A DNA stretch of 64,000 bases, taken from Hyaloraphidium curvatum SAG 235-1 (Eukaryota > Fungi > Monoblepharomycota). Under the pieces are notes generated by a model. The model worked only from the letters and a program-made list of their open reading frames with translations, made no database searches and had not been told where the DNA came from. How positions within the stretch are numbered: position 1 is the stretch's first letter; the number at the start of each line of letters is the position of its first letter. The translations under genes and the position numbers were made by a program. The stretch covers positions 248,001 to 312,000 of the forward strand of contig JAIVFI010000017.1 in NCBI GenBank assembly GCA_025558095.1, in the 5' to 3' direction. This document shows, in pieces, positions 2,752 to 18,367 of this stretch.

Positions 2752-3000
2752 GAACCAGATGAGCGAGGGAGTGCCAACGATCCGACGATACCCGGGGCCG
2801 AGTTCCCTGCCGATCAGATGGATACCCCGTGTACCCTGCGTCTGATGCAATCTTTTGGGCCACCTCATCCGATCGCTCGAGTCCAGGTGCGGGCGGTGAC
2901 GGCGCCGATCACCCGTCGATCGCCAGCCCTCGCCAATCGAGCGATCGCCCAATCTCCGAGGCGGCGCCACACCCACCAGCGGCCCCGCATCTCGTCCTCA

Positions 3001-5428
3001 ATGCCGTCGAGCGACGCGGGCGACCCGTCCGCGGTGTCGTACGGGGAGCGGTTCCGCGTGCGCGGCGGCGGCGCGGTTGTGCTGCCGCTGTCGGCGGGCG
3101 ACCGCATCCGCGTCGTCGACCCCGAGGGGCGCCAGGCCGCCGAGGTCGCCGCGTGGCTGGGCGGCTCCCCTTCGCTGAAGGCGCTGCCGTCGCTGTCGGG
3201 GCTGCCGGCCCGCCCGTCCGCCGCGCTGCCCGCGCTGGCCGCCGACGCCGCCGAGGACGCGCGCGCCGTCGCCGCCGGGCTGAAGCAGAAGGGCATCGAC
3301 GCCGACGCGCCCGCCGACGCATACGCGGCATTCGGCGGCGACTCGCCCGCGGGCGCCGCGGAGCTGTTCGGCCCCGCTGCGGGCGACCTCGTGCTGCTCG
3401 TCGCCGCCCCCGGCACGGACAAAATGGGCCTCGACGACGCGCCCGCGGACAGGTCGCCCGCGACGGAGCTGTACGTGTACGTGCACCGCGCCGCCGGGTC
3501 CGCGGGGAAGCAGCGCGACGCCGCGCCGCCGCCGCCGCTGGCCGAGCCAGTGCTGGACATCCGCGTGGACCGCTCGTCGGCAAAGTCGTACACCGTCAGG
3601 GCCGGCGAGTACATCCAGATCGTCGACATTGCCGGCAGGCAGTGCTCGGACTTTCTGGCGTTCGCGAAGAAGGACCTGGAGGAGGGCAAGGAGCTCGACC
3701 TGGACCCCACCGTGACCCGCACCGTCAACTCGTCGTCCTACCCGGGGCCGGGGCTGTACGCCAAGTACTTTGACAAGAACTTCCGCGCGCTGGTCGAGGT
3801 CGTGCGCGACACGGTCGGGCGGCACGACACGTTCGCGCTGGCCTGCACCCCGAGATGTTCGTCTCCGCCAGCATGCCGTCCTTGCCTCGACGATACTGAT
3901 CTCGTTTTGTCCCACCACGACAGACTACGCCGACATGGGCTACCCCGGCCACCCCAACTGCACCGACAACTTCAACGCCGCGCTGGCCCCCCACGGCATC
4001 GCCCCCCGCAACTCGTGGCAGGCCGTCAACCTCTTCTACAACACCGGCATCGACGCCGCCAACCAGATCTACCTCGATGAGCCGTGGAGCCGCCCGGGGG
4101 ACTACGTCCTCTTCCGCGCCCTCTCGGACCTCGTCTGCGCCTCCTCGGCCTGCCCCGACGACATCGACCCCGCCAACGGGTGGGACCCCTCCGAGATCCA
4201 GGTCCGCGTGTACCCCTCGGCGTGCGACTTCGACCCGGGGGTCGCGCTCCGCGTCACCCCGGACGCGGACCCGGTGCTCACCCGCCGCTCGGGCTTCCAC
4301 CCGCGCACCTCGGCGCTCACGCGGAGCTTCGCAGAGTACCGCGGGTTCTGGCTGCCCACGTGCTTCACCTCGCACGGGCCCGTGGAAGAGTACCACGCGT
4401 GCCGCACGGCCGCGGCCATCATCGACCTCTCGGCCCTGCGCAAGTTCGAGGTGTTCGGTCCCGACGCGCTGCAGCTGATCAACGCGTGCGTCACCCGCGA
4501 CATAAAGAAGCTCGCCATCGGGCAGATCGTGTACACGGCGCTGTGCGTCGAGACGGGGGGGATGCTGGACGACGCGACGGTGTTCCGGCTCGGGGAGGCG
4601 GACTTCCGCGTGGTGTGCGGGGACGAGTACGTGGGCAAGTGGCTGCGCGAAAGGGCGGAGCTGATGGGGCTGCGGGGGGTGTGGGTCAAGAGCTCCACGG
4701 ACAGGGTGCACAACGTGGCGGTGCAGGGACCGAAAAGCAAGCAGATCCTCGCGGCGTGCTTCGAAAAGACCGAGGGCAGGCCCGACGTCTCGGAAATCGG
4801 GTGGTTCAAGTTCACCACCGGCAAGGTCGGCGGCCGCCCCGCCATGGTCAGCCGCACGGGCTACACGGGCGAGTTCGGGTACGAGGTGTGGGCGCACCCG
4901 GCCGACTGCCCCGCGGTGTGGGACGCGCTCTGGGCGGCGGGGCAGCCGCACGGCCTGGTCCCGCTGGGCCTGACGGGCCTGGACGTGCTCCGGATCGAGG
5001 CCGGCCTGGTTTTCTTCGGGTACGAGTTCGACGACCAGGTGGACCCGTACGAGGCCGGCGTGGGGTTCACCGTGCCCCTCGTGAGCAAGGCCGACGACTT
5101 TGTCGGCAAGACCGCGCTGCAGCGGCGCAAGGCCCACCCCAACCGCGTCCTCGTCGGCCTCGAGCTCGAGGGCAATGAGCCCGCGGGCCACGGGGACTGC
5201 GTGCACGCCGCCGGCGCGCGGGCGCAGGTGGGCGTGGTCACGAGCGGGTGCAGGAGCCCCGGGCTGGGGAGGTGCATCGCGCTCGCGAGGGTGGCGGTGG
5301 AGTTTGCGGCGCCGGGGACGAGGCTCGAGGTGGGGAAGCTGGACGGGCACATGAAGAGGATCGGGGCGGCGGTGACCAAGCCCATCTTCTACGATCCGGA
5401 GAAGAAGAAGCCGAGGGGGGTGGAGTGA
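3001..5428 (+). CDS. tdm: Trimethylamine N-oxide demethylase-like protein (DUF1989 + GcvT/aminomethyltransferase THF-binding domain), 786 aa, one intron 3857-3923
   Basis: Splicing GTTCGT...CTGAT...CAG joins ORFs 2818 and 3770 in frame to give GRQCSDF...RHDTFALACTPRYYADMGYPGHPNCTDNFN...SACPDDIDPANGW, followed by GcvT motifs (DLSALRKFEV, SRTGYTGEFGYE, LRIEAG, FYDPEK). Confidence 0.88.
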
Positions 5429-6452
5429 TCCGGGGGGGCTCGACGATTTGGATGTGAAGGAGCGATTTGCCAGCGATGCAATAGACCATGCTTTGGAATG
5501 CTGCGCGCGTCAATGCCCTAGGCGATCGGGAGGAGTACCGACGCAACGGGCCCGCTACGTCCCTTGGGAGGAGCTGGACCGTTCCCCTCTGATGCCCTTC
5601 CCGAATCCACGGCTTGCGCGGCCGGCGACGCCGAAGGATGTTTGTCCCTGTGCGAAAAAGGTAATCGCTGGCCCGATCAGATCCGTCGATGGGGTCGAAG
5701 GCGGGGACCGGCGGGGAGTGAGTGGACCCGAAGAACGGGTCCAGGCCGACCCACCGTCCCTGTGCGGTCCTCCCGGACCGGCCGGCGGCGGGGCCCGCTC
5801 CCGGCGGGAAACGAACGGCGTGCATGGAACGCGGAGACCAGCAGCCCGTATGGTAAGAGGGACGGGCCGGCGATGGGTCGGAAGGGCAGCGGGCGGCGGG
5901 AATGGCGGGAGCGGGCTCGGCACGCGGTGGAAGGGCTTCCATTGCCGGAATCCCGGGCAGAACGTCCCGGCAAGGGCCTCGCGGGGCAACGGACGCGTTT
6001 GAGGATCGGCGGATGCGCAGTGGCAGGCAACGAGGGCGTCGGACACGTATCTCGCTCACAGGGACACACATCCGGCGCGGTCTTGGAACCCTTCCTGATG
6101 GCCGCCGGCGCCGGGAGAAGCCGGTCGAGGTGGATGGAGCGCCGCGGGCGCCGGCGGAAGCGACGGCGGGCCGGAATGGCGGTGGGTCGGGGCCGCGAGG
6201 CGGCGGTGGCTGGGGTGGGGAAGGCGTGGGCGGCCGACCTGCCCCGGCGAATCGGGGTCGGCCGGCCCCGGGGCTATCGGCACCGAGCCTGCAGCGTCCT
6301 TGAAGGGGCACGGAGGCCGCCCCGCGGGATCTCTGCCTGGTTCGCAAGTCCCGATCGTCCCCAGCGGGCGTGTGATTGTCCCAGCCCCTCCCCAGCGTCC
6401 CCGTTTTGCCGAAGCCCATCCGCCACCGACGCGTCCCGGGCGCCGACCAGCG

Positions 6453-8045
6453 ATGCGGCTCCCGGCGGGACTGCGGTTGCCGCCGTGGACGCGGCGGCCG
6501 CCCGCGTGGGCGGCGCGGCCCGTCATCCGGTGGGCGCTCGTGGCGGCGGCCGGCGCGCTCTTCTTCCTCGCGCACTCGGCGGGGCTGCTGCCGCCGCCGC
6601 CCGCGCTGCTCTCAGCCGGCGGCGCGCCGCCTCTGCTGCACGGCGGCGCGCGCATCGCGTCGGCCGTCGGCCCGCCCGCGCTCGCCGGCGCGCGCTGGAC
6701 AGACCTTTCCCGCACGCTCGCGCCGCCCGGCCGCGGCGAGCAGTTCGAGGCGTTCGACCTCTTTGCCGGCGTGTGCATCGACGTGCCCGACTCGCCCGAG
6801 CCGAAGAACCCCGTGGCCGCGTGGTTCGTCGGCGACGTGCCAAACAGGAGGCGCGCCGAGCGCGCCCTCGCGCGCGCCCTGGGCGGCCCGCGCGAGCCGC
6901 TGCCCGTGCTCCGCGGCGCGGACCCCAGGGCGGCCGGCCGTGCCGCAACGCGCTACCCCGGCCGGACCTACCTCCCAAACTGCCTGTGGTCGACCGTGCC
7001 CGGCGCGGGCCACCTGATGTTCGGCGCCAGCATGGCCATGGAGCTCGGGGAGCGCCCGCCAAAGGGCATGCACGCCCTGGACCGCGTGTCGATGGTCTGG
7101 TGCCCGCTGTGGCGGCGCTGGGAGGGCAAGATCTACTGGGACTTTGCCCGCAACGGCTGGGAGTTTGGCCGCACCGTGCTCGACCTGGTCTTTGCCCGGT
7201 GGCCCGCCGCGGGGCTGATCCCGGACCTGCGCGCCGAGCGCTTCCCCATCATGCGCGGCGTCTCGTGCTTCGACGAGCTCCTCGTCTCCCGGCGCGAGGG
7301 CGTCCTCCTCGCTCGCGCCGACTCGCGGCCCTTCCTGGAACGCCTCGCCGCCGCCGTCCCGGGCCACAACACCACCCTCCTCCCCGACCCCGGCAAGGCC
7401 GCCCGCCGCCTCGACGAGCGCTGCCGCTCGCGGCGCCTCCGCGCGGGCATCTTCCAGCGGCACCAGTTCCACCGCCACGTCAAGCTCAAGGAGCGGCGCT
7501 TCGTCAACCTCGACGACATCATCGGGCTGCTCGCCGACTTCACCTCCTCCCCCGTGGACGTGTTCGACGTGAACCACACCGTCCCCCTCGGGAGCCAGAT
7601 CGACCGCTTCGACGCCTACGACGTCCTCCTGACCCCCGTCGGCAGCCAGATGTCGGGCATGGTGCTGGTCGGCCCGCGCGCGCAGCGCGCGGTGGTCGAG
7701 ATCGGCGCGTGCGTGAGGGACACGTTCTGGAAGGAGAACGGGGACCGCCTGGGGTACCGCGCCTACGTCCTGTCGACGGGCCACGTGCCGGACGTGCCGC
7801 AGCTGGCCGACGCCATGGTCGGCTGCAGGTGGGCCGCGGTGGGGGACAACCCGGGCCCGGCGCTGTTCTGCCCGGCGCGGTGCGAGGTGACGGACGGGGA
7901 CCTGATGGTCAACACGACGCTGCTGCGGGCGCACCTGGAGTGGACGTTCGGGAGGATGTGCGACGAGGGGTGGAGGCCGCCGAGGGCGGCGCCGGACTTT
8001 TCGCGGGTGGGGTGCGCGGCGAACAGGGGGATGTGCGGGTGCTAG
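6453..8045 (+). CDS. Type II membrane glycosyltransferase, GT61/DUF563-like
   Basis: N-terminal TM (WALVAAAGALFFLA) and Pro-rich stem. C-terminal RRFVNLDDI...SQIDRFDAYDVLLTPVGSQMSGMVLV...VVEIG resembles the GT61 signature. Intronless. Confidence 0.6.
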   Translation: MRLPAGLRLPPWTRRPPAWAARPVIRWALVAAAGALFFLAHSAGLLPPPPALLSAGGAPPLLHGGARIASAVGPPALAGARWTDLSRTLAPPGRGEQFEAFDLFAGVCIDVPDSPEPKNPVAAWFVGDVPNRRRAERALARALGGPREPLPVLRGADPRAAGRAATRYPGRTYLPNCLWSTVPGAGHLMFGASMAMELGERPPKGMHALDRVSMVWCPLWRRWEGKIYWDFARNGWEFGRTVLDLVFARWPAAGLIPDLRAERFPIMRGVSCFDELLVSRREGVLLARADSRPFLERLAAAVPGHNTTLLPDPGKAARRLDERCRSRRLRAGIFQRHQFHRHVKLKERRFVNLDDIIGLLADFTSSPVDVFDVNHTVPLGSQIDRFDAYDVLLTPVGSQMSGMVLVGPRAQRAVVEIGACVRDTFWKENGDRLGYRAYVLSTGHVPDVPQLADAMVGCRWAAVGDNPGPALFCPARCEVTDGDLMVNTTLLRAHLEWTFGRMCDEGWRPPRAAPDFSRVGCAANRGMCGC

Positions 8046-8423
8046 GCTGCGCCGGGACGGGGACGGGACGGGGGCAACGGGGAGTGAGCGCGGTCGATGG
8101 GGTCGGATGGCTTGTAGGCGGCCGGACCAGCTAGAAAAACGACCGTGCGAAAGCGTGCGTTACACGGCCATGTTCTACTCGGCATTCCACGGCGAACACG
8201 GCGGGGAAGCGGTATCGGCATCAAGCCGTGTAGATAACTGCGCCCGCCCCGACCGGACGACGTGCAGGGCCATCGGATGTTCCGACCGGCCCGATGGTGC
8301 ATCGGATGCGACGGGCTGTCCGTGCCGTGCGCCACTCCGATCAGCAGCGTGCCCTGCGCGGAAGCGTCCAATCCGCCCAAGGCCAGTGCCTCCCGATCGC
8401 TTCCGAATCCGCCCGCCACCGAG

Positions 8424-9959
8424 CTACGGCCTCGACGGGCACACGTAATCCATCGTCAGGAACACCCCCAGCCCCCGCAGGATGGACCACAGCGCCACGA
8501 CGAGCGTCAGGATCGTCACCAGCACCGTCCGCACGATGCCGTACGTCACGGGGAACCCGAGCACCTTGGAGCGGTACCGGTCCGTGTCGGTGTAGCTCCG
8601 GAGCACCTCGGCGTCGGCGTCCATCGCGGCCAGCAGCGCGGGGTCCGGTCCCGGGTGGGGGGCGGAGGTGACGAGGCAGCGCCGCAGCTCCCCGAGCTCC
8701 TCCAGGGCGTCGAGGTACAGCTCACGGATGTCGGAGATCTGGGCGTTGGCGGCAGAGACGTTGAGCAGGTCGACGAGGAAGTTGGAAGTCCCAACGTAGA
8801 GCAGGTAGATCGGATACATCGCGGGAAGGCACGAACAGAACACCACGTTGAGCAGGCCCGATACGACCGCCGCCGAGACGCCGATCAGCATCGGAGAGCT
8901 GGCATTGTACTGCGCGGCGGCCTGCCGCCATAGGCACGCGAGGAGCCGGTGCAGCGCCATGTATCCGTCCCGTCCCGGTAGGAACCCTTCCCCGCCTCCA
9001 GATGCGCCTCCAGATGCACATGCAATCCTGTACCGTTCCATGGTGCTTCCTAGAGCGAGCCGCATCGCGCGCCGGTTGACGCGGCGGGAGAGCTGGAGCA
9101 GCGGGATGTTGGTGCTGAAGCGCACGCAGACGATGGGCACGAAGAAAATGAGGTATCCGACAATGAAGAAGACGGTGACGATCGCGGACCACGCGTTGCT
9201 CCACGTGCGGGGCAACGACACCGCGACGATCCAAATCTCCGAGAGAAAAAGCAGTGCCGTCAGCCCGCCCTTCGTGAGCAGTTCCGCGACGCGGGCGAGA
9301 CCTGCTTGCCGGGGCAGCTTCCCGGCGCACCGCGGGCCCGCACAGGAGCAGAGGGGATCCTTGTCCTCGTGTACGAGCAGGACGGGGTCCGTCGGGCCCG
9401 GGAGGGTTCCAACGAGGAGCTGGCTCCAGCGGGCTAGCCTCGCGGCGCCATGGGAGGAAAAATCCCGCGGCGGCGGGGCGGTGACCACCGTTCCGGCCCC
9501 AGCAGCGCGTCGCACGACGCTGAAGGAGCCCTGGTAAGCCGCGAAGAGGGAGGGCACGACGCCCGCCACGGTGCAAAAGAAGACCCAGCCGACCGTGCCA
9601 ACCGCGAGCTGCACGGTCCCGTACGCGTCCCGACCCAGGATCCACGGGACGACGGGCAACGCTGCGGCCGAAAGCCACATCCAGACGTTGCGTAGGATGA
9701 AACTGCGCGCCAACGGCTCGAGGGCGACCTGCAGCCGCACTGTCGCGGCCAGCACGCCCGAGCGGCGCGACAGCGCGCCGACGAAGGCGTCGAAGCCCAG
9801 CGGCGATTCGGCGCGCGCCTCGGCGGCGGGATCGGGCGGCGGCGGGGCGCCGGGCACCCCGGGGGACCACGACACGGGCGCGGGCAGTACCACGAGCCAT
9901 TCCGCGCCGTCGAGCCGAAACGCGGCGGGCGCAGCGTCGATCTTCACGTCGTCCGCCAT
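8424..9959 (-). CDS. 7-TM protein, putative gustatory-receptor-like / DUF3537-like 7TM ion channel (paralog A), 511 aa, intronless
   Basis: Seven hydrophobic segments. C-terminus YRSKVLGFPVTYGIVRTVLVTILTLVVALWSILRGLGVFLTMDYVCP is clearly paralogous to the gene at 10106-11772. Confidence 0.7.
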   Translation of the reverse strand: MADDVKIDAAPAAFRLDGAEWLVVLPAPVSWSPGVPGAPPPPDPAAEARAESPLGFDAFVGALSRRSGVLAATVRLQVALEPLARSFILRNVWMWLSAAALPVVPWILGRDAYGTVQLAVGTVGWVFFCTVAGVVPSLFAAYQGSFSVVRRAAGAGTVVTAPPPRDFSSHGAARLARWSQLLVGTLPGPTDPVLLVHEDKDPLCSCAGPRCAGKLPRQAGLARVAELLTKGGLTALLFLSEIWIVAVSLPRTWSNAWSAIVTVFFIVGYLIFFVPIVCVRFSTNIPLLQLSRRVNRRAMRLALGSTMERYRIACASGGASGGGEGFLPGRDGYMALHRLLACLWRQAAAQYNASSPMLIGVSAAVVSGLLNVVFCSCLPAMYPIYLLYVGTSNFLVDLLNVSAANAQISDIRELYLDALEELGELRRCLVTSAPHPGPDPALLAAMDADAEVLRSYTDTDRYRSKVLGFPVTYGIVRTVLVTILTLVVALWSILRGLGVFLTMDYVCPSRP

Positions 9960-10105: not shown

Positions 10106-11772
10106 ATGAGCGGAACCGAGAAAACCCACGACGCCACCGCCGGAACCGATGCCGTCGCGCCCGGCGTCCCAGCTTCCTTTGCCTCACAGGCCGACTCGCG
10201 CGTCCCGGACGCCGACTTCACCCCCGAAGAATGGGTGTGCCTATTTCCCGCCGCGGCGCCGCCCTTCCGGCCTCTGCTGCCCGACGAGGAATCCGGGGAG
10301 GCGGGGCGCGATCCCTCCGAAGAGTTCCGAAAAGCGAACCCAGTGACGCTCGAAACCATGCTGGAAGAGTTTGACAACCCAGTGCTTCGCTTCTTTGCTT
10401 GTCTCGGCGCGTCTCGAAGTGCGAGCTTTTTGGGCTGGAGGATGGCTTGCCAGACGGGACTCGGGTTCTGCATGATGCTGGTCTTCCAGGGGCTGGCCTG
10501 GTCTTGGAACGATGGCCTCTTCGGGACGAAGCAGATGATAGCAGGTGTGACTTCCCTGACAGCGTTGGCTTTTGCCGCCGTTGGCACGTTCGTGCTCGTC
10601 GCGGTGAACATGCCCAAAGTGCCGAAGGTACTGGATTTTGCCGCGCCCGCGGTGCTCTGCAGATGGCTGCAGGTGGGCAAAAAGACAGAGCAAGAAGGAC
10701 AGAAGTCTGGCTCGACGCTTGAGGGAACCCAAAGCCTCCTCGCGCACGAAGAGGGCGACCGATTCTGTCCGTGCTCCAGCTGCATCGGCAACGTGCAGCA
10801 GCTTGCGGGTTTCATGACCTTCTTGGACATCACATTGAATTTCGTGCTCAACTTTCTTTTCACCTGGACCGCAGGATGGACCGCGTGGGTCACGTACGGC
10901 TCCAAGCTGTGGTCCACGTGGTGGGGTTGCGTTCTCGCGGCAATCGATGGTCAGGCAACCGCACGTCCTTCGCAGGGAGCATTTACTCTGACATATTTGC
11001 CTTCCTTCCGTTTGCAGTTTGTGCTGCTGTGGCCTACATAATGAACTCTGCCTGTCGCTTCGTTGGCATCGCCAACATTGCATACGCGAGGCTGGAAGCA
11101 AGACTCCACCACCGCGCCGTCGTCCTCTCCATGAGATCTATGCTGGAAACTGTGCTCAGCGGCCGTTCGGCTAGCCAGGCGCCGTGGCTGTACGTTCGAC
11201 AGCACCGCAACTTTGCAGCGTGGTGCAAGATCCGCGAGATTCAGGACCAGACCCTGCTCAGTAACTCCGTGTTTGTCATCCTGTTCCCCTTGGCCATCGT
11301 CGCTATCATAGTCAATGTTGTGAGTGAAAACTGGACGGGTGAGCGTGAAACGGGTGCTGACTCTGGTGCCATCCTGCAGGCCGTCGGGTCCTGCATCCCG
11401 GCGTGGCTTCTCTTTCTCACTTGTACCATCATGCTCTACATGCTGGTCAACGCCGTCAACCTCACCTCGCGCAACAACCTCATCTCCGTGGTCGCATCGG
11501 CGTACCACGACGGCCGCCGCGACCTCCGCACCGCGTGCCTCAAACTCGGCCCGACCCCGCTCGCTGCCTCGCTGGAGCAGCACGACCGGGTCATCGGTTC
11601 GTTCCTCGAGGTGTCGCGATACAGCGCCAAGATCCTGGGGTTCACCGTCTCGTACGGGGGCGTGCGGACGATGCTTGTGACGCTGGTCACCCTCATGGTG
11701 GCCTTGTGGAGCGTGTTCCGGTCGCTGGGGGTGTTCTTCACCATGGAGAGCTTCTGCCCGATTGTATCGTAG
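10106..11772 (+). CDS. 7-TM protein, putative gustatory-receptor-like / DUF3537-like 7TM ion channel (paralog B), introns 10950-11017 and 11320-11379
   Basis: Splicing joins ORFs 9959 and 10771 in frame. C-terminus YSAKILGFTVSYGGVRTMLVTLVTLMVALWSVFRSLGVFFTMESFCP. Removing the 60-nt intron gives IIVNV|AVGSCIPAW, matching LLNVVFCSCLPAM in paralog A. Confidence 0.7.
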
Positions 11773-13335: not shown

Positions 13336-14035
13336 ATGCACTTCAACCCAAACTCGCCCCGGCGCCAACAGCGCCCGCCGGCGGCGCGCGACGCCGGGAA
13401 CCCGCGGCAGCCGGCGAGCGCCGCGGCGCAGTTCAAATCGAAGGTGGGCCCCGTCCCGTCCCCGGAAACCGACCCTTGCCGACCTTTGCCGCCTCCCGGA
13501 ACCCCGATCCCCCGCCTGCCACCCCCCTGGACCCGCGCCGGACCCTCGCCCCGGATCCCTAACGCACCCCTCCGCCGGGCCCCGCAGGTCGTCTGCGACC
13601 TCTCCTGCTCCTCCTGCTCCCTGCACATCTGCCGCCGCGGCATGCGCGCCGTGCTCCTGGGGGACCACCGCGTCGAGCTCTACTCCACGGACCTGCCGCC
13701 TGCGCAGGCGGTGCAGGTCGGCGGGTGCTACCGGACGCGGTCGTGCGAGTGCCGCGTGGGGGACGTGGCGTGCACGAGGTGTGGGGGGGTGATCGGGTAC
13801 CATGTCACGGCGCCGTGCTCGAGGTGCTTGGAGGGAAGCAACAACGGACACTTTTGGTGGGTGCCTCGGCTGCTTGCTGGGGTTCGTTCCTGACGAGCGG
13901 GATAGGATGTTTCTGCCCGATGCCGTGCGGGGAACCGAGCGGCTGGACGCGAGCGGGAGGAGGTTCTTGGTTTGGAGCGAGCTGGGCGATGCCGAGGAGG
14001 ACGAGCCGGCCCAGGCGGAAATCGTGTGCCGGTGA
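13336..14035 (+). CDS. FAM72: FAM72 family protein, introns 13444-13587 and 13857-13905
   Basis: C-x2-C...RGMRAVLLGD...ELYSTDLPP...CECRVGDVACTRCGGVIGYHVTAPCSRCL...NNGHFW|MF matches the FAM72 signature. Confidence 0.88.
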
Positions 14036-14405
14036 TCCCTGCGGCCCGGGGATGTTTGGGACAGGACTGCGAACCGACTATTCTCGCGTCTTGAGACGCA
14101 CACGGTGGCGCTTTTGAGCGTCGGGAGTTTTTCGGAGGGGAGGAATCAAGGAGGCGCGAGGGCATGGACATCGCTGGAGGAATCGCAGCGGTGGAGGATG
14201 GTAGGCACTGTCGCGGACCTCCGTGCCGCTATCACCACTGCCTGTACTTGCTAGACGTTGATTGATCTATCGCCTCTGCCGCCATTCCTGCCCCCGTCCA
14301 CGCGCTACACAGCAAAGCCGCATCAGAGGCCGTGGCCCCTGGCCGTGCGCAAGAGTCCACACCCCTCCTCGTCGACCTAACCTCACGAAAGCGCCGCTAT
14401 CTGCA

Positions 14406-17145: not shown

Positions 17146-18367
17146 ATGCGGCGCCCCGTGGTTCGCTTCGTTGCCGCGATCATCGCCCTCGCTTTCATTC
17201 CCCTGCTCCTCCGGACACGTGGCCCAACCGATCGGCCCTTTCTCGAGCTCAAGTCCACCACCGGCGTTATCTCGTCGCCCGTCGACGAACACATTAGTTT
17301 TCTTGCCCCGACCCCGCTCGTGGTCTCGATGGCCCGCGAGAGGCTGCTTTTGACCATGAAGGCAGCGCTCGCTGGTGTCAGCAAGGTCGCCCTTGTCGGC
17401 ATTCCACTGCACGGCAACAAAGGAGACTCGGCTATCACAGCGGGGGAGCTGGAAGTGCTGAAGCAGCTTGGGATCAGCGTGGTTTACTTCGGGGTTGAAC
17501 ACGACGAAGCGGAGAAGCAAGCCACCGAGATTGAGGAAGCTCTGCCTCCAGGACCTTCCTCCGGTGAGTCCTGCCATGTTCGCATGACTTGACCGCACTG
17601 ACGACTGTGTGATTGCAGCTGTGCTGTACCACGGAGGCGGAAACTTCGGCTCGATCTGGAAGAACGAGCACGGCTTCCGGCTCTTCCTCGTGCGACGCCT
17701 CCTGCACCGCCGGATTGTGCTGCTCCCCCAAACCATCCTTTTTTCCGGCTCGGATCGCCTGCTGCAGGAGACTGTCGATACCTATGCTCTTGCGAAAGAC
17801 CTCACGATCATGGCACGGGACCCCCGATCTTTCGACATCCTCGCACATCGGTTTGCACAGCACAAGATCTTCCATTGCCCGGACTCGGCTCTCGCTCTCG
17901 GACCCAAGAACTCATCGCTGGTGCTGGAGGCGGCCGGAATGGTCCAGGACATCGACATTCTCTACCTACTGCGTGTCGACCACGAGTCCCGATCGCGCGA
18001 CTGGAGCGCCGATACCCTCCGCGCGAGGCATCCGGGCCTCAAAGTGGAGGTCGCGGACTGGCTTTTCTACGGGGAACCCGTCAAGGACCCGGACCCGATC
18101 GCCGCCAACCTCCGCCGCACGGAGCTCGGCCTACGCTTCCTTGCGCGCGCCAGGGTCGCCGTCCTGGACCGCCTCCACGGGCACATTCTCGCCAGCATCT
18201 TGGACGTGCCACACGCCATCATCGACAACTCTTACGGCAAGCTCACTGGGTTCCACGGGGCGTGGACGTTGGGCGCAGACAATGTTGTGGTGGTGGCGGA
18301 CGTGGACGAGGCGTCCGATGCGGCGGAGCGGCTGCTCGTCGAGGCGCCGGCTGGGAGGGTTCAATAG
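17146..18367 (+). CDS. pvg1: Polysaccharide pyruvyltransferase, Pvg1/EpsO-like, type II membrane, intron 17564-17618
   Basis: N-terminal TM; HGNKGDSAI, HGGGNFGSIW, LPQTI, ARDPRS, CPDSALALG and DRLHGHIL...DNSYGKL motifs. An alternative ATG lies at 17089. Confidence 0.85.

Follow-up and report, generated by a model that had tools for sequence, protein, structure and literature searches.

A putative bacterial-type trimethylamine N-oxide demethylase (Tdm) encoded in the genome of the freshwater fungus Hyaloraphidium curvatum

Turnover of trimethylamine (TMA) and trimethylamine N-oxide (TMAO) in water has so far been credited to bacteria and their enzymes Tmm, Tdm, Dmm and GmaS. What, then, is a gene resembling tdm, which encodes the TMAO demethylase of bacteria, doing in a fungus? 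The question is raised by a window of 64,000 nucleotides in Hyaloraphidium curvatum (contig 17, positions 248001-312000 of a 31.9-Mb assembly), in which positions 3001-5428 of the + strand were predicted, from the letters alone, to encode a bacterial-type Tdm that the fungus had acquired horizontally. Our analysis supports such an acquisition and places the gene in a real fungal chromosome, on the basis of its nesting among bacterial sequences, its splicing, its matching residues, its host-like composition and its conserved gene order. We consider it likely that this is a nuclear gene for a working TMAO demethylase of the bacterial Tdm family. What is new is a member of a known family in an unexpected host, a freshwater fungus, where it is paired with Tmm genes, is shared with one related eukaryote and is probably active.

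The gene consists of two exons. Exon 1 (3001-3856, + strand) opens with an ATG at 3001 and contributes 285 complete codons and, from codon 286, one base, the first. Its product comprises an N-terminal DUF1989-like domain and the first half of a catalytic DUF1989 domain (D217, H275, F278 and C282). The spliceosomal intron that follows (3857-3923, + strand) is a phase 1 GT..AG intron of 67 nt that begins with GTTCGT, ends with ACAG, carries a branch-like CTGAT site at 3895-3899 and has a GC content of 58%, versus approximately 70% in the exons. The frame resumes at 3924 in exon 2 (3924-5428, + strand), which encodes the rest of the catalytic DUF1989 domain (H295, C298, Y324, C362 and D364) and then a folate-binding domain made up of GCV_T and GCV_T_C, with a TGA stop at 5426-5428. 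Without splicing, the exon 1 frame continues out of frame to a stop at 4080. The Pfam DUF1989 profile is itself split across the junction, with profile positions 3-92 in exon 1 and 103-168 in exon 2, ahead of GCV_T and GCV_T_C. The protein length of 786 amino acids (285 + 1 + 500) and all full-length residue numbers were obtained by arithmetic, while searches, scores and trees were run exon by exon on the separate exon pieces.

Splicing was visible in transcript data. A 1929-nt contig of run X1 covers 3482-3856 joined straight to 3924-5465 and skips exactly the 67 GT..AG letters. The label of this run is a guess; nevertheless, depth is zero in the intergenic bins beside the gene, which indicates that the run behaves as RNA. 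The same 3857-3923 junction is used by the NCBI gene model (P0001; KAI9021162.1). At its 3′ end the transcript contig stops at 5465, where it continues into sequencing adapter. This leaves a short untranslated transcript end (5429-5465, + strand), and read depth is zero over 5497-5718. Sequence, Pfam domains and transcript contig thus confirm the predicted two-exon gene of 786 amino acids whose 67-nt intron interrupts the metal-binding motif, and removal of that intron, for which RNA evidence had been sought, was found in run X1.

Taken exon by exon, the protein corresponds closely to a bacterial Tdm of known structure. In alignments to the TMAO demethylase of Paracoccus sp. DMF (PDB 9q59, 9q5l and 9q5a; PMC13619132, eLife 2026), exon 1 residues 13-284 cover 30-287 of 9q59 with an E value of 4e-52, and exon 2 residues 1-498 cover 290-787 with an E value of 1e-186. 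Since these alignments meet at the junction, taking out the intron recovers the bacterial protein without any gap or inserted residue. The two proteins are of similar length (786 versus 793 amino acids), are colinear over Paracoccus residues 30-787 and have the same four-part architecture of Tdm, in which an N-terminal DUF1989-like domain, the catalytic DUF1989 domain, GCV_T and GCV_T_C lie in one chain of approximately 760-800 amino acids. They differ in that the fungal gene is nuclear with an intron, and in that its N-terminal domain is far less similar to the Paracoccus protein than the remainder. The best model for both exons was NCBIfam NF053776, the TMAO demethylase equivalog, with 230 bits for exon 1 and 833 bits for exon 2.

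This family assignment disagrees with the public annotation. The NCBI protein KAI9021162.1, named "glycine cleavage T protein [Hyaloraphidium curvatum]", is 100% identical to the exon 2 translation. The gene is therefore already present in NCBI, but it is misnamed GcvT and has a faulty N-terminal model. The C-terminal 370 residues of the fungal protein do share the GCV_T and GCV_T_C fold with GcvT; however, GcvT is a single-domain protein of approximately 360-400 amino acids and lacks the 410-residue DUF1989 part. A GcvT identity was rejected on scores below cut-off for both TIGR00528 (213 versus 235.85) and NF001567 (256 versus 300), along with the extra DUF1989 half. Judged by its sequence, the protein carries a domain-level mislabel.

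The residues that matter for catalysis are also in place. Roles for zinc, substrate and folate residues have been described in a cryo-electron microscopy study of the Paracoccus enzyme (PMC13619132). The three zinc cysteines of the fungal protein, C282, C298 and C362, align to C285, C301 and C365 of Paracoccus and to C263, C279 and C343 of Methylocella silvestris, and D217 and D364 are identical to the substrate/product contacts D220 and D367. Also kept are H278, F281 and H298 of Paracoccus (fungal H275, F278 and H295), whereas F327 is replaced by Y324, an aromatic-for-aromatic change. All four folate-site residues (R480, F582, F672 and K782 in Paracoccus numbering) are identical. Further, 179 bacterial Tdm sequences have 111 near-invariant columns (at least 98% conserved) in the exon 2 region, of which the fungal protein retains 108 and departs from three, with R to K twice and P to I once. 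Mismatch at the catalytic residues had been named as grounds for abandoning the prediction; the catalytic and metal residues match on alignment.

The active-site codons, counted from the sequence and its translations, span 3649-4159 on the + strand, and the intron falls inside this span. They lie at 3649-3651 (D217), 3823-3825 (H275), 3844-3846 (C282), 3950-3952 (H295), 3959-3961 (C298), 4037-4039 (Y324), 4151-4153 (C362) and 4157-4159 (D364). On recount, the predicted spacing in the spliced protein was correct: D217, H275 (+58), F278, C282, H295, C298, Y324 and C362. Equating this spacing with that of M. silvestris Tdm held for five of the eight residues: D198, C263, H276, C279 and C343 of the M. 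silvestris BL2 enzyme (Zhu et al. 2014/2016, as cited in PMC12560246) agree exactly in spacing with fungal D217, C282, H295, C298 and C362. The predicted H256, F259 and Y305 would correspond to H275, F278 and Y324. The original prediction also described a zinc/iron enzyme. Zinc agrees with the retained three-cysteine site; iron is disputed, since the Paracoccus study found a single three-cysteine zinc site and no iron site (PMC13619132). The iron site and the hexamer were proposed for the Methylocella enzyme; both are disputed by the Paracoccus structures, and the iron site also by PMC12560246.

Several observations nevertheless weigh against a TMAO demethylase of unchanged function. The two exon scores on NF053776 add, by simple addition, to approximately 1063 bits, just below the 1100-bit cut-off, while the nine bacterial relatives tested all scored above it (1170-1260 bits). 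W476 of Paracoccus, at the contact between the N-terminal and folate domains, is Ala in the fungal protein. In phylogenetic trees the fungal gene and its one eukaryotic relative share a long stem branch (0.45-0.48 substitutions per site), and together with the score this makes some functional drift possible. For the M. silvestris Tdm itself, folate use is disputed in PMC12560246. The strongest alternative is a Tdm descendant that now acts on something other than TMAO, for example a different N-oxide or methylated amine, or that works without folate coupling; the genome also yielded no bacterial-type downstream genes for dimethylamine (DMA) or monomethylamine. We consider this alternative unlikely. 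All residues described as contacting zinc, TMAO, DMA or tetrahydrofolate (THF) are kept, with F327 as Tyr, the near-invariant columns are almost all retained, and the same genome carries Tmm, the enzyme that makes TMAO.

Where the gene came from was addressed by similarity searches covering approximately 15 billion proteins in all, with the best 120-150 matches listed and fungal genomes covered in part. Among the best 120 matches, all apart from the protein itself and one eukaryotic copy were bacterial or metagenomic, at 63-68% identity, and the named ones include Actinomycetes, Carbonactinospora, Streptomyces, Acidobacteria and Alphaproteobacteria. Matches were found at 74 loci in genomes of named bacterial species. 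The gene order is permease, dmmA, dmmB, dmmC, dmmD, tmm, tdm in Hyphomicrobium zavarzinii and gmaS, mgsA, mgsB, mgsC, tdm in a Bryobacterales genome. The bacterial relatives are thus true methylated-amine pathway genes in classical clusters.

The eukaryotic copy lies on a 14.9-kb Logan contig (L001; 53% GC) from run SRR26194948, at L001 positions 6591-9170. Its product is 77% identical to the window protein in the exon 2 region and 66-69% identical in exon 1. Two trees of the exon 2 region were built, with 113 and 51 rows and with GcvT-like outgroups. In both, the window gene and the L001 copy form a pair with a support of 100 that is nested inside bacterial Tdm, among Tdm genes from tmm, dmm and gmaS clusters. 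The donor is less clear. The pair groups with Pseudomonadota in the 113-row tree (SH-aLRT 85) and with Actinomycetota in the 51-row tree (80), and these conflicting, weakly supported placements, a further point on the other side of the scale, single out no donor phylum. Nesting in Proteobacteria had been expected; bacterial nesting was recovered, but a proteobacterial donor was supported weakly and in one tree only, and is not required.

Searches for a third eukaryote-type copy came back empty. A word-indexed search of 5.8 billion clusters with exon 1 returned the L001 product at 66% identity and everything else at no more than 49% over comparable coverage, and an exhaustive search of 1.84 billion representatives with exon 1 again returned the L001 product only, at 389 bits, with the next match at 218. 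A JGI metagenome scan gave no match for further eukaryote copies, and the Atlas clusters with the Tdm architecture were 100% bacterial, with no eukaryotic one. A broad vertical distribution in fungi, which would have spoken against transfer, was not what we saw: one other eukaryote-type copy was found among the approximately 15 billion proteins. The gene is nested in a prokaryotic clade and narrowly distributed in eukaryotes, and transfer from a prokaryote to a fungus is supported by this pattern. Such an event is unsurprising in kind, since genes of prokaryotic origin are common in fungi: a survey of 750 fungal genomes reported 20,093 of them (PMC11708051).

The locus is shared between the two eukaryotes. 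Downstream of the window gene lies a gene assigned by Pfam to the FAM72/YPEH2ZP family (13336-14038, + strand), and L001 positions 11014-11502 match window positions 13585-14038 with 63-70% amino-acid identity. A second anchor is a gene with the Pfam name PS_pyruv_trans (pyruvyltransferase; 17146-18367, + strand), where L001 12263-13249 matches window 17296-18295 with 44-55% identity. Both anchors have the same order and strand in the two organisms. These shared downstream neighbors indicate that tdm stood at this locus in their common ancestor. On the other side of L001 tdm, an MFS transporter gene lies directly upstream (L001 4655-5749). The L001 gene has two GT..AG introns, at L001 7493-7596 and 9037-9115, and neither is at the Hyaloraphidium site; the first sits 22 nt downstream in the coding sequence, within the same metal-binding motif. 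The GC content at third codon positions (GC3) is 0.96-0.97 for the window gene, close to the 0.98 of the neighboring C2H2 zinc-finger gene, while that of the L001 copy is 0.63. Each copy carries the composition of its own host, which points to an old transfer.

Could the gene instead be ancient in eukaryotes, inherited vertically and lost nearly everywhere else? Two eukaryotes do share it with conserved neighbors, and it contains introns and has fully adopted the codon usage of the host. We nonetheless consider this very unlikely: the pair is nested within bacterial Tdm at approximately 65% identity rather than sister to all of it, neither the search of 5.8 billion clusters nor that of 1.84 billion representatives returned another eukaryote-type copy, and the Atlas clusters of this architecture are exclusively bacterial. 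Acquisition from bacteria accounts better for these data. In the scenario that we favor, tdm would have passed from a bacterium to an ancestor that H. curvatum has in common with one or more other eukaryotes, host codon usage would have been acquired since, and each lineage would have gained its own introns.

The 5′ end of the gene is where the evidence is most mixed. The NCBI model P0001 starts at 2818 and uses an in-frame upstream extension (2818-3000, + strand) that is probably outside the protein, then jumps from 3000 to 3451 over a non-canonical AT..AC junction and so loses approximately 150 residues, the N-terminal domain. The stretch that it cuts aligns to bacterial Tdm and to the L001 copy, and deletion of the equivalent residues 1-150 of the Paracoccus enzyme leads to aggregation (PMC13619132); for these reasons the ATG at 3001 is the better N-terminus. 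The N-terminal residues MPSSDAGD are common to the window gene and the L001 copy, and the transcript contig of the upstream gene extends to 2860. In the same upstream region (2770-2950), three copies of a CCGATC motif lie close together, within 2810-2910, and similar CCGATC words occur upstream of the L001 gene. The motif was set aside, with a marginal enrichment over the window (87 observed versus 67 expected, a count reached in 2 of 100 shuffles) that is too weak to call.

Transcript support in this part of the gene is thin and counts against an intact, expressed enzyme: two colinear pieces with a depth of 4-7 cover 3068-3511, versus a depth of 167 elsewhere. In addition, the main contig of run X1 lacks 11 nt at 3516, inside a stretch of GCC repeats (3510-3530), and this gap would shift the frame. 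However, a 182-nt contig of run X2, a 2025 freshwater poly-A metatranscriptome, spans 3502-3683 without this gap and differs from the window at one base (A to G at 3549). The gap is likely to be an assembly artefact in low-complexity sequence. The first 480 bases of the gene are 77-81% GC, which may explain the poor transcript coverage. The run X2 match also hints at expression in nature by H. curvatum or a very near strain.

The weak RNA signal over the 5′ third and the gap in one contig could also be read as signs of a decaying or silent relic of transfer without function. This too seems very unlikely. All 786 codons are open in a genome where the gene has had time to reach the host GC3, the orthologue in the second lineage is likewise intact at 77% identity, the near-invariant columns are kept and the spliced transcript is present at appreciable depth. 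Bacterial contamination or misassembly is barely credible: the closest named relatives are all bacterial and, apart from this case, the Atlas clusters show the domain fusion in bacteria only, but the 67-nt intron is removed in the transcript contig, GC3 is like that of the host, the gene lies within a contig of 731,982 bp, flanked by a C2H2 zinc-finger gene and further eukaryotic genes, and a second eukaryotic contig carries it with two introns and the same downstream neighbors. The gene is thus physically integrated in its host, as its intron, composition and eukaryotic neighbors indicate; splicing, flanking genes and synteny together rule out contamination, and the earlier argument from the intron is upheld by the spliced transcript, GC3, the neighbors and L001.

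If the gene does encode a Tdm, its mechanism can be proposed by homology to the Paracoccus enzyme. A single zinc would be held by C282, C298 and C362 of the central DUF1989 domain, and TMAO would bind it through its oxygen with help from D217, Y324 and D364. TMAO would then be split into DMA and formaldehyde, and the formaldehyde would move to the C-terminal GcvT-like domain to be caught on THF as 5,10-methylene-THF. The N-terminal domain would be required for assembly.

A supply of TMAO may be provided by the fungus itself. A search with Hyphomicrobium Tmm identified two bacterial-type, intron-bearing trimethylamine monooxygenase genes in the H. curvatum genome. The first lies on contig 34 (479983-481467) with two introns (NCBI model P0241, 454 amino acids), and the second on contig 32 (390428-391999) with approximately four interruptions. 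P0241 scores 809.6 bits on NF058570, the Tmm equivalog, against a cut-off of 675, and shares 74-79% identity with the Tmm proteins of Rhodobacteraceae, Gemmobacter and Burkholderiales. Two interruption positions are common to both paralogues, which indicates that they duplicated after intron gain. The Tmm genes probably represent another gain from bacteria within this pathway. With two Tmm-type genes, the cell can probably convert TMA to TMAO and then to DMA and a one-carbon unit, and H. curvatum probably has the means to degrade methylated amines as bacteria do.

The fate of DMA is less evident. In the H. curvatum genome, DmmA (PF22290) had no match, DmmC and DmmD queries gave weak or self matches only, a GmaS query gave glutamine-synthetase-like matches of only 27-43% identity and no close GmaS, and copper amine oxidase had no match. 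The original prediction had called for a search for tmm, dmm and gmaS partner genes; tmm was found in two copies, whereas no bacterial-type DMA monooxygenase and no close GmaS were found. Without these and a copper amine oxidase, a full nitrogen route is not evident, which counts against the fuller version of the pathway. The genome does contain four to five genes, well above cut-off, for PF11927 proteins (haem-dependent oxidative N-demethylase alpha-like), at contig 12 172108-172851, contig 32 403963-404721, contig 4 85669-86565 and contig 11 44319-45211. Their products are only 27-32% identical to bacterial DmmC but are possible candidates for DMA demethylation. One PF11927 gene lies 12 kb from the second Tmm copy. 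Elsewhere, on contig 38 (35500-35757), a stand-alone DUF1989 gene has 44% identity to the Tdm core over 84 residues and is probably of the urea-carboxylase-associated type. The route was predicted to serve nitrogen or one-carbon scavenging. The steps that are supported, TMA to TMAO to DMA and methylene-THF, favor one-carbon gain, while nitrogen scavenging has no downstream genes behind it.

Use of methylated amines is not in itself new to fungi. Budding yeasts obtain nitrogen from choline, TMA, DMA and methylamine, with choline converted through TMA, DMA and methylamine to ammonia (PMC5816127). Similar to what we propose for H. curvatum, this fungal route strips methyl groups from TMA-type compounds and releases formaldehyde. 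In contrast, it does not involve TMAO, its TMA and DMA demethylases are CYP-like activities with enzymes unidentified, and its last step is a copper amine oxidase, which is not detectable in H. curvatum. The earlier statement that no such pathway had been described in fungi therefore stands for the Tdm route but not for methylated-amine use in general. Among the literature matches listed, none described Tdm from a fungus or any other eukaryote, and the main text of two surveys of horizontal transfer in fungi mentions neither Hyaloraphidium, DUF1989 nor aminomethyltransferase.

The broadest reading of these data is that H. curvatum, and at least one relative with tdm at the same locus, carry out the two opening steps of bacterial aerobic TMA degradation (Tmm and Tdm) with enzymes derived from bacteria. 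The fungus would then be the first eukaryote known for this route, channeling methyl groups from one widespread aquatic osmolyte directly into the folate one-carbon pool and either passing DMA to the PF11927 proteins or excreting it. To this reading as a whole we would give about an even chance.

The public annotation can be corrected in two respects: the name GcvT is wrong, and the NCBI model splices away the N-terminal domain. A Tdm expressed by a eukaryote may also be of use in biosensor and TMAO-lowering work, which now uses bacterial enzymes. If our interpretation is true, the passage of two consecutive pathway enzymes from bacteria to an early-diverging fungus, with different introns in two lineages, would be a clean and datable case of transfer, and a fungus with expressed Tmm- and Tdm-type genes would represent a eukaryotic sink for climate-relevant amines.

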